DNA of 63,361 bases, filler included, from Octopus bimaculoides (taxonomy: Eukaryota), in assembly GCF_001194135.2 (NCBI RefSeq). It is 5 parts of 5 records of this genome, joined end to end, with 100 filler letters (N's around TTAATTAATTAA, not from the genome) between each part and the next. Parts side by side here need not be neighbours in the genome. Positions count along the whole stretch, not along the records: positions 1 to 27,285 come from NC_068997.1; 4 more parts are not named here. One strand, written 5' to 3'. Position numbers and translations under genes: made by a program. The notes below the pieces were generated by a model. That model was given only the letters and a program-made list of their open reading frames with translations. It was not told where the DNA came from and searched no databases. Below are positions 3,561 through 5,099 of this stretch, in pieces (position 1 is the stretch's first letter; each line of letters starts with the position of its first letter).

Positions 3561-3768
3561 GACATACATATGCACAAACATACATACATAGATGTATGTA
3601 TAGACACACACATAAGTATGTATTATGTATGCATGTGCGTGTATGTATGTATGTATGAATATATGCATGTATGTATGTATGTATGTATGTATGTATGTAT
3701 GTATGTATGTATGTATGTATGACTTCGTATTGTGTTTCTGTTTACTCTCCTCTGTTCTGTCCTTCCAG

Positions 3769-4020
3769 CTTGTAAATTTTCTGGTAGAAGAGCCAATTCA
3801 GACGACTGCAAGAAGTATTCTGAATGCATCAACAACGTTGAAGTTGAACTATCGTGTGGTCCAGGCGAATTATTTGACAACAACCAAAAAGATTGTTACC
3901 CAGCTGTCTTTGCTGAGTGTATAAGAGGTTCCATAACTACAACCACGGCATTGCCGACTACCACAACCACGGCATTGCCGACTACCACAACCACAAGTCT
4001 ACCGCCAACCACAGCAACAC
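3769..4020 (+). CDS. CBM14 (peritrophin-A) multi-domain protein, visible exon A: CBM14 domain plus Thr-rich linker
   Basis: Acceptor ccttccAG (3767-68), donor GTAATA at 4021; 252 nt, phase 1-1. Encodes CKFSGRRANSDDCKKYSECINNVEVELSCGPGELFDNNQKDCYPAVFAEC (C-x11-C-x5-C-x9-C-x12-C-x7-C), then ITTTTALPTTTTTALPTTTTTSLPPTTAT. Confidence 0.88.
3939..4010 (+). repeat. Three 24-nt coding tandem units (TTTALPTT-like mucin linker)
   Basis: ACAACCACGGCATTGCCGACTACC x2 (3939-3986) plus a diverged third unit (3987-4010). Confidence 0.9.
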
Positions 4021-4032
4021 GTAATACGAATA

Positions 4033-4179
4033 TCTTCTTCTTCTTCTTCTTCTTCTTCTTCTTCTTCTTCTTCTTCTTCTTTTTCTTCTTCTTCTTCTTC
4101 TTCTTCTTCTTCTTCTTCTTCTTCTTCTTCTTCTTCTTCTTCTTCTTCTTCTTCTTCTTCTTCTTCTTCTTCTTCTTCT

Positions 4180-4213
<34 letters not shown>
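4033..4213 (+). repeat. (TTC)n/(GAA)n tract of about 60 units
   Basis: Direct reading, with two interruptions. Probably the 3' tail of the adjacent minus-strand retroelement. Confidence 0.95.
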
Positions 4214-4800
4214 TGGGATCCCAGTTTTGGGAAAACGTACTCTCCCCATCCTTGTACCCACCCTCGCCGTTGATGGGTGAAGATAAATGGAACAACACCT
4301 GTGACGGGTTTTTGGTTTGACTGGATCCAAACTTGCCAACATGTAACCCACGCAGCGTGTCTCGAAGACATCCTCTTAGGTACATGTGAAATGAGACATG
4401 CACGACAAGGCAACGAAACTGCAACGGTATGCCGTCAGCTCAGCTGTGGCTTGAACTGTGCTTTCTAGCCATTCGGCTTTGGCATTGCTGTCTTTTACCA
4501 TTGAGATCATATCTCTTTAACTGTTCGTTGGGGATTTTGGCTTATTTTTGGAAGTACGTGCCTTTAGATATGCTCATATCAGAGGCAATAGGCCTTTTCG
4601 TGAAAGTTTAGGTGCGACGGTTTTTCTACTAAATCAGATGTTCAGCTCTTGTCCTACACTGATTGGATAGGAATGTGACGACCAGAGTTTTAGGAGAGGC
4701 TGTATCTGTTTCATGATCCCTCCCTCATTACTTTTGATATGTTTAGCTTGGTTTATATTGTTTAAAGTGCTGGTTCCATTAGCGTTAATTTGGTAGTGAT
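4214..4800 (-). mobile_element. Decayed LINE 3' end (possibly RTE-type) with (GAA)n tail
   Basis: Stop-riddled reading resembling an RTE C-terminus, running into the GAA tail. Weak similarity only. Confidence 0.4.
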
Positions 4801-4817
4801 GTATAAATTTACTTAAT

Positions 4818-4857
<40 letters not shown>

Positions 4858-4895
4858 TGTGTTTCTGTTAACTCTCCTCTGTTCTGTCCTTTCAG

Positions 4896-5099
4896 CTTGT
4901 ACGGGTACCGATAGAGAACCCAATAAAGGTGACTGCAAGAAATATTTTGAATGCATCAACAACGTTAAAGTTGAACTATCGTGTGGTCCAGGCGAATTAT
5001 TTGACTACAAACAAAAAGGTTGTTACCCAGCTGTCTTTGCTGAGTGTATAAGAGGTTCCATAACTACAACCACAGCATTGCCGACTACCACTCTTCCAT
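4896..5099 (+). CDS. CBM14 protein exon B
   Basis: Acceptor cctttcAG (4894-95), donor GTAATA at 5100; 204 nt, phase 1-1. Same 6-Cys spacing: CTGTDREPNKGDCKKYFEC...CYPAVFAECIRGSITTTTALPTTTLP. Confidence 0.88.

Follow-up and report, generated by a model that had tools for sequence, protein, structure and literature searches.

The window analysed here comprises 63,361 nucleotides of the genome of Octopus bimaculoides (NCBI RefSeq assembly GCF_001194135.2; five parts joined with filler, positions 1 to 27,285 being from NC_068997.1). It contains part of a gene annotated as "chitin-binding domain protein cbd-1-like", in which two neighbouring exons, A and B, are nearly identical apart from a 33-nt segment encoding the loop between the first and second cysteines (Cys1 and Cys2) of a CBM14 domain. 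The comparison with Octopus sinensis described below suggests that the bodies of the two exons have probably been homogenised by gene conversion, and that the loop has been left as an older, roughly neutral island.

Exon A (3769-4020, + strand, 252 nt, phase 1-1) encodes a CBM14 domain followed by a long Thr/Pro linker (TTTTALPTTTTTALPTTTTTSLPPTTAT), and exon B (4896-5099, + strand, 204 nt, phase 1-1) encodes a CBM14 domain with the short linker TTTALPTTTLP; both match Pfam CBM_14 (E = 5e-7 and 1e-7, respectively). The two were aligned without gaps at an offset of +1127, pairing 3728-3964 with 4855-5091. The first part of this homology block is the 3' end of the preceding intron (3728-3768 before exon A, a polypyrimidine/branch region ending in CAG; 4855-4895 before exon B), where 2/41 nt differ. 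The CT and Cys1 codon that follow are the same in both exons (0/5 differences), and from Cys2 onward (3807-3962) 7 of 156 nt differ, five of them non-synonymously and two synonymously. Within the loop (3774-3806 in A, 4901-4933 in B), 14/33 nt and 8/11 residues differ (KFSGRRANSDD vs TGTDREPNKGD), and residues R6, N9 and D12 are kept. In total there are 23 differences between the exons (9/204 outside the loop and 14/33 within it), and their density in the loop differs from that in the rest of the block with a Fisher p of 2.3e-8. When windows of every length in the range 9-80 nt were scanned, the statistic selected 3775-3803, and its value was reached by 0 of 5000 permutations. The clustering of the differences in the loop is real and not due to chance, and the counts of an earlier note on this DNA (2/41, 14/33, 8/11, 7/156 and five non-synonymous changes) were reproduced exactly by our realignment. 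A compensated frameshift was considered as the cause of the loop differences and rejected; a gapped alignment brought no reduction in their number, so they represent substitutions. The earlier note also described a mosaic, with exon A resembling exon D and exon B resembling exon C, two copies further downstream. This resemblance is present at the nucleotide level, where A and D have GGT AGA AGA GCC and AAG..TCT in common and B and C have CCC AAT, TTT and TAC in common, and its basis is just two or three sites in each case.

The comparison covered two species with one genome each. The O. sinensis locus (L001) contains no N and carries exons Z, s1, s2, s3, s4, s5, C, D, E and F; the reference list of PMC10925132 cites this genome as a PacBio assembly. 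Over 1 kb, the sequence before exon A is 86-88% identical to that before s3, and the sequence downstream of exon B is 81-90% identical to that downstream of s5. The intron between A and B (4021-4895, donor GTAATA), which is orthologous to the s4-s5 intron, is 79-86% identical to L001 24687-25738 and 22759-23805 (82-86% for the s4-s5 intron, with a match also to its duplicate, the s3-s4 intron). The linker type agrees with the flanks: A has a long linker, as do s2, s3 and s4, and B has a short one, as do s5 and s1. As judged from these sequences, A is shown to be the positional orthologue of s3/s4 and B that of s5. The orthology of the flanking introns, together with the linker type, indicates that both exon positions predate the split between the two species, whose neutral divergence is roughly 10-19%.

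Only two exons of the A/B type are assembled in O. bimaculoides, and five are assembled in O. sinensis. In the latter, a very recent tandem duplication with a period of 1928 nt comprises s3, s4 and their introns (L001 22533-24685); the 162-nt domains of the two exons are identical, and a single linker difference turns LPTTTAT into LRQPTAT. This duplication indicates that unequal exchange, in addition to conversion, alters the copy number of the exon type.

Outside the loop, the sequences group by species. A and B differ at 9/204 nt, whereas every cross-species pair differs at 19-27/204, and A-B was the closest pair with a bootstrap value of 0.977. In the quartet of A, B, s3 and s5, 14 sites follow the species (AABB), none follows the exon position (ABAB) and none shows the remaining pattern (ABBA). 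The homogenised body of exon A, from Cys2 to the early linker (3807-3964), differs from that of B at 7/158 nt and from the orthologous exons at 14-20/126. Derived states exclusive to A and B include GGC at codon 32, a G in the first position of codon 41, and AGA in place of the CCA found in all remaining A/B- and C-type copies; the derived states common to the two exons lie at 3865, 3891 and 3924-3925. Exons s2-s5 have exclusive derived states of their own (TGC twice, and GAA). The polarity of all these states was set with the s1, C and D copies. Because the two positions are old and separate, and the bodies nevertheless group by species and share derived states, concerted evolution by gene conversion is indicated in both lineages. 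Furthermore, mosaic exons were found in O. sinensis, where s5 combines the loop of s3 (0/33) with the body of s2 (2/126) and where sC holds s3-type stretches.

Within the loop, the grouping is the reverse. The loop of exon A differs from that of s3/s4/s5 at 7/33 nt and from that of B at 14/33, with a bootstrap value of 0.98 for A with its orthologue. In a triplet test using A, B and s3, A sides with s3 at 9 of the 11 sites in the loop and with B at 19 of the 23 sites outside it (Fisher p = 5e-4). The closer relationship of the A loop to its orthologue than to B indicates that most of the A-B loop difference predates the homogenisation. The earlier note had offered patchy gene conversion as one of two explanations, and the cross-species comparison, with bodies grouping by species and the A loop grouping with its orthologue, supports that option.

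The other explanation offered was diversifying selection, against which equal variability of the loop at synonymous sites had been named beforehand as evidence. This is the pattern that we found. The proportions of synonymous (pS) and non-synonymous (pN) differences between A and B, calculated by the Nei-Gojobori method, are 0.42 and 0.43 in the loop and 0.04 and 0.05 in the body; the old paralogue pairs A-C and A-D have pS values of 0.32-0.46, about the level of the A-B loop. A loop pS as high as pN suggests that the loop is an older, near-neutral island that was left unhomogenised. Synonymous divergence of this size is expected of an old, unconverted segment and not of recent amino-acid selection. 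The orthologous loops of A (7/33) and C (8/33) have diverged to about the intronic level, and when pooled they have a pN/pS of 1.23, a ratio of very low power that is based on 2.5 synonymous differences. Positive selection on the loop is not supported by these data, which have little power.

Elsewhere in the gene, the loops of exons Z, D and E are near-invariant between the species (1-2/33), and their bodies (D at 15633-15818, E at 21592-21783 and Z at 16523-16681 of the O. bimaculoides locus L002, each compared with L001) have a pN/pS of about 1.1, with 26 non-synonymous to 6 synonymous differences. The bodies of A and C have a pN/pS of about 0.45 between species. Outside the cysteine framework, the gene as a whole is thus weakly constrained. 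The combination of fast bodies and stable loops in Z, D and E is the reverse of that in the A/B/C-type exons.

The patch is not confined to O. bimaculoides. Between s2 and s5 of O. sinensis, the loop differs at 6/33 nt, all non-synonymous, vs 4/158 after Cys2 (p = 0.002); a counter-example is provided by s3 and s5, which differ at 0/33 in the loop vs 7/158 after Cys2. The recurrence of the patch and the counter-example together suggest that the loop acts as a separate recombination segment, sometimes skipped and sometimes carried along, and is not absolutely protected.

The 41 nt of intron upstream of the exons call for a different interpretation. This piece is the polypyrimidine/branch-site region, whose conservation extends to every A/B/C-type copy in the two species (A-s5 4/41, B-s5 4/41, C-sC 2/41), and the states that A and B have in common there are ancestral, with no O. 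bimaculoides-specific derived state. It was therefore rejected as a neutral reference, and the use that the earlier note had made of the flanking intron as a yardstick for loop divergence does not hold, the piece being a constrained 3' splice region. Several microsatellites lie around the two exons: a (CTT)n tract at about 4034-4214 after the donor of exon A, and (TATG)n and (TA)n tracts (3630-3721 and 4826-4850) that abut the homology block. The positions of (CTT)n and (TATG)n are conserved beside s3/s4 in O. sinensis. This placement suggests that the converted block is bounded by microsatellites on both sides.

The exons of the window were sought by a direct-repeat search and a six-frame cysteine-pattern scan, which revealed five similar exon-sized units on the + strand with Cys1 codons at 3771 (A), 4898 (B), 14095 (C), 15635 (D) and 21594 (E). 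A sixth, weaker unit, F, terminates in a stop codon at 22966-22968. Every unit is in phase 1-1, with an AG acceptor and either GTAATA or GTTAGT as the donor. Exons C (14093-14266, + strand, loop DYNGRHPNPDD), D (15633-15818, + strand, loop NFLGRRADTND) and E (21592-21783, + strand, loop NFVGRKPDAND) each encode a CBM14 domain, and the terminal coding exon F (22811-22968, + strand, stop TAA) encodes a partial CBM14-like domain. Neither the concatenated exons nor the five-domain alignment gave a useful result in word-indexed protein searches; the gene was recovered by an exhaustive profile search only, as two near-identical proteins, XP_052829861.1 of O. bimaculoides and its orthologue XP_036366098.1 of O. 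sinensis. When XP_036366098.1 was the query of a word-indexed search, the only addition was an older model of this gene, and other octopod orthologues were not recovered.

The sequence of XP_052829861.1 reads exactly A-P-B-F-C-P-D-L-E-D-F, in which the single letters between exons are codons split by the junctions; exons A and B match residues 291-374 and 376-442, respectively, without a difference. Since this protein holds the exons in sequence, the annotated transcript uses them in series, and inclusion in series is found in three RefSeq models (two of O. bimaculoides and one of O. sinensis). According to these models, A and B are consecutive constitutive exons for successive domains of one protein. 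The description of A and B as duplicated exons in the earlier note is thus correct insofar as they are similar tandem exons, and it does not extend to their being alternatives. The older O. bimaculoides model, XP_014783195.1, leaves the A-B order unchanged and adds a mucin-like repeat and a signal peptide, the latter being present in this model only and not in XP_052829861.1. From these sequences, the gene product is predicted to be a secreted, mucin-like protein with 8-10 CBM14 domains, each exon encoding one domain and its Thr/Pro linker. A literature search on octopus peritrophin/CBM14 proteins yielded nothing on this gene.

The window is identical to L002 from position 28277 of that locus on. 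Upstream of the window, at L002 9900-13600, the two O. bimaculoides models seem to translate the mucin-like repeat differently (STAATPAAT... in XP_052829861.1 vs TPTLESTTPTLES... in XP_014783195.1), a comparison in which XP_014783195.1 was not mapped onto the DNA. At least one of the two 5' gene models is wrong. In O. sinensis, an inverted copy of exon D with about 97% protein identity to residues 481-544 of XP_036366098.1 lies in the D-E intron (L001 35099-35300, - strand); no counterpart was seen in the O. bimaculoides window. A C-type pseudo-exon fragment, CDYNGRTPNE, is located between s5 and exon C of O. sinensis (L001 27738-27780). The window is rich in microsatellites, and its introns contain transposon remnants at 20220-20621 (- strand), 20854-21204 (- strand), 2464-2976 (+ strand) and 418-645 (- strand). 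Among these remnants are a DDE_3 (Tc1/mariner-type) transposase fragment with an upstream helix-turn-helix (HTH) open reading frame (ORF), a weak zf-RVT match below the gathering score, and an ORF with a mariner-like PYSPDLAP motif and no Pfam match.

Exons A to E match Pfam PF01607 (CBM_14) with 30.2-37.9 bits (gathering cut-off 22.1), and the six-cysteine spacing C-x11-C-x5-C-x9-C-x12-C-x7-C is invariant in them and in all O. sinensis copies. The corresponding spacing in EHEP is CX15CX5CX9CX12CX5-9C (PMC10619976). AlphaFold2 (AF2) models of the A and B domains were confident, with predicted local distance difference test (pLDDT) values of 87.5 and 86.9, respectively, and had identical secondary structure with strands at 6-9, 12-20, 23-28, 33-36 and 41-44. 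In both models, the loop consists of coil (2-5), strand 1 (6-9) and a turn (10-11). The top Foldseek matches were 8IN6/8IN3, 5HBF, 1DQC, 4ZCE, 6SO0, 4Z4A and 6BN0 (TMq 0.63-0.77), and the neighbours of the domain model include Aplysia EHEP, the CBM14 domain of CHIT1, tachycitin, Der p 23 and Avr4. The canonical fold of these proteins has a three-stranded N-terminal and a two-stranded C-terminal sheet (PMC10619976), and the models predict the same 3+2-strand CBM14 fold for the A and B domains. By analogy with EHEP and Avr4, the disulfides would be C1-C3, C2-C6 and C4-C5. Both EHEP and Der p 23 have a CBM14-type fold without chitin binding, and the binding residues vary among CBM14 members (PMC10619976).

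By cysteine spacing, Cys2-Cys6 of the octopus domains would correspond to Cys64, 70, 86, 101 and 109 of Avr4, and Cys1 to Cys40, the partner of Cys70. In Avr4, Lys49-Pro53 contacts the N-acetylglucosamine (GlcNAc) residues GlcNAc-1 to -3 (PMC6128652). The residue that precedes Cys5, which is D in exon A and G in exon B, would occupy the position of Avr4 Trp100, and the replacements N37Y and N38K would lie at or beside the hairpin of the Avr4 NDN motif (PMC6128652). From cysteine spacing alone, the A/B differences may therefore concentrate on the ligand face.

These correspondences are relevant to diversifying selection, under which the block would have been homogenised or duplicated recently and the loop, as a ligand or recognition surface, would then have undergone fast amino-acid change. 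The loop would map to the Lys49-Pro53 segment of Avr4 (PMC6128652), among the five A/B replacements outside it, at least two and perhaps three would fall at or beside Avr4 binding positions, both loops fit the confidently predicted CBM14 fold, and the six loop differences between s2 and s3/s5 are all non-synonymous against a body difference of 2-5/126. However, the ratio of non-synonymous to synonymous change (omega) in the A-B loop is about 1, the synonymous divergence of the loop is about ten times that of the body, and the A loop is nearer its orthologue than B. The loops of s3, s4 and s5 are identical, which shows that adjacent loops are not always kept distinct, the Z, D and E loops differ at only 1-2/33 between species, and with so few differences an omega above 1 could not reach significance. 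We regard diversifying selection as unlikely on this evidence. A combined version, in which the loop and the Cys4-Cys5 hairpin positions form the ligand-facing surface and selection keeps position-specific loops while conversion keeps the scaffold uniform, is quite doubtful. The similarity of A and B might also suggest mutually exclusive, Dscam-like exons with the loop as an isoform-specific epitope, as the two are in tandem, have the same phase and have a conserved 3' intron segment in common. Both O. bimaculoides RefSeq models and the O. sinensis model, however, splice all copies serially, the exons are unequal in length (252 vs 204 nt), each has its own mucin-type linker as expected for serial domains, and phase 1-1 permits serial inclusion; mutual exclusion is extremely improbable.

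The loop of exon B itself (TGTDREPNKGD) is an outlier, differing at 11-16/33 nt from every other copy in both species and having 4-5 private bases. For about 9 of the 14 A-B loop differences, the state of B is found in some other copy (ACx in s3-5, CCC AAT in s2-5 and C, AAA in s2, GAA in Z). The loop may have been overwritten by a short tract of micro-conversion from a paralogous CBM14 exon outside the assembled sequence, such as an s1/s2 orthologue in the 4.9-kb gap or an exon elsewhere. This would account for a loop that stands apart from all 14 sampled copies (pS 0.57-0.59 against s5 and s2) between A-like flanks, and two N runs of L002, 20436-25305 (4870 nt) and 26916-28276 (1361 nt), lie just upstream of the window where the s1/s2 orthologues should be. 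No donor was found, however, in a search of both strands of both loci, where the best match (22/33) was at the level of shuffled sequence, or in the 150 best CBM14 proteins, whose 273 C-x11-C loops gave 6/11 residues as the highest match, with s2 of O. sinensis. Such an import is improbable in our assessment. In O. sinensis the loop of s5, the orthologue of B, appears to have been overwritten by the s3 type; B may preserve an old loop lineage, or may have received its loop from an unsampled copy.

The state of the assembly also bears on whether A or B could be a chimera or a partial collapse of near-identical exons. The O. bimaculoides assembly is Illumina-based and was later scaffolded (PMC10925132), the locus contains 15.5 kb of N, and more exon copies are present in O. 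sinensis. Within the window, N runs are found at 6955-7857, 9327-9420, 10453-11365, 12059-12683 and 14384-14651, several of them between exons B and C. It is probable that the two O. bimaculoides RefSeq models do not contain all CBM14 exons of the gene, and that the short-read assembly lacks some of these exons. For A and B, however, an artefact is very unlikely: there is no N between 3700 and 6954, the exons differ at 23 positions, their unique flanks correspond to different O. sinensis introns, a patch of this kind is also seen in the N-free O. sinensis locus, and both exons are in two RefSeq models.

Gene conversion of the bodies with an unconverted loop thus remains the explanation that we favour. 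The two exon positions would already have been present in the common ancestor of O. bimaculoides and O. sinensis, and non-reciprocal recombination between the tandem exons after the split would have homogenised the bodies within each species. The tract in O. bimaculoides would span at least 3865-3925 and probably extend from Cys2 to the start of the linker. The loop would not have been carried along and would have kept its paralogue-level divergence, with further change at a roughly neutral rate; left unconverted, it is now conspicuous as a hypervariable patch amid near-identical sequence. The similarity of the 41-nt intron piece would derive mainly from the constrained 3' splice region. The loop may have escaped because tracts ended there or because mismatch repair was patchy in a mismatch-dense segment; alternatively, weak selection for distinct loops, or import of the B loop from a copy in an assembly gap, may be responsible.

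Several points weigh against this explanation. A single conversion tract would not skip 33 nt, so that two tracts, patchy repair or selection must be assumed. Conversion upstream of the loop is unproven, as the 41 nt contain no derived state and splice-site constraint suffices to explain their similarity. The loop of B is no nearer its positional orthologue s5 (12/33) than other copies, and the two N runs lie where further copies should be. A simplified GENECONV-style longest-run permutation test gave small p values, but the runs were driven by rate heterogeneity, a divergent patch in s1 and the poorly aligned, non-homologous linker of the C type, and the test was not relied on. Finally, the conversion reading is based on a single genome from each of two species.

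Multi-domain peritrophin-A mucin-like proteins, including insect peritrophins, intestinal mucins, CBD-1 of C. elegans and EHEP of Aplysia kurodai (PDB 8IN3/8IN6), resemble the octopus protein in their six-cysteine domains, signal peptide, Thr/Pro-rich linkers and serial arrangement, whereas the octopus gene is an uncharacterised cephalopod gene. Avr4 differs from it in having a GlcNAc-stacking Trp just before Cys5, where the octopus copies have D, G, N or T. To our knowledge, the arrangement of one exon per domain together with homogenisation within species has not been described for this gene. A similar combination is known from the variable exons of protocadherins, in which nearby tandem exons are homogenised within species and certain segments stay diverse; gene conversion predominates there, especially among close exons, and selection acts on specific ectodomain residues (PMC1885805). 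The octopus exons differ in that they follow one another within a single protein, whereas those of the protocadherins are alternative first exons, and the unhomogenised segment of the octopus exons is only 33 nt long. The exon arrays of Dscam likewise consist of tandem duplicated exons for one domain or part of a domain, in which a diverse patch has been proposed to be the epitope for binding. In Dscam, tests for positive selection were underpowered and reduced constraint remained possible, and its paralogous exons gave no sign of gene conversion (PMC3236188). In contrast to the mutually exclusive and unconverted Dscam exons, those of the octopus gene are included together and conversion among them is evident.

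The case is therefore an ordinary though clean example of mosaic concerted evolution, a known phenomenon, in an uncharacterised cephalopod gene. It illustrates that a hypervariable patch within near-identical sequence can arise without positive selection, when conversion erases the divergence around an unconverted segment, and that scans of tandem-domain genes for the ratio of non-synonymous to synonymous substitution rates (dN/dS) need recombination-aware partitions. For cephalopod biology, it brings to attention a fast-evolving, copy-number-variable gene for a secreted multi-CBM14 mucin-like protein with position-specific loops. If the loops do face the ligand and selection keeps them specific to their positions, the protein would be a string of domains with graded or distinct specificities for glycans or polyphenols, a constitutive serial counterpart of the variable-exon recognition systems. 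If the loops tune ligand specificity, the locus would represent a compact natural experiment in which homogenisation of the scaffold is set against diversification of the binding loop.

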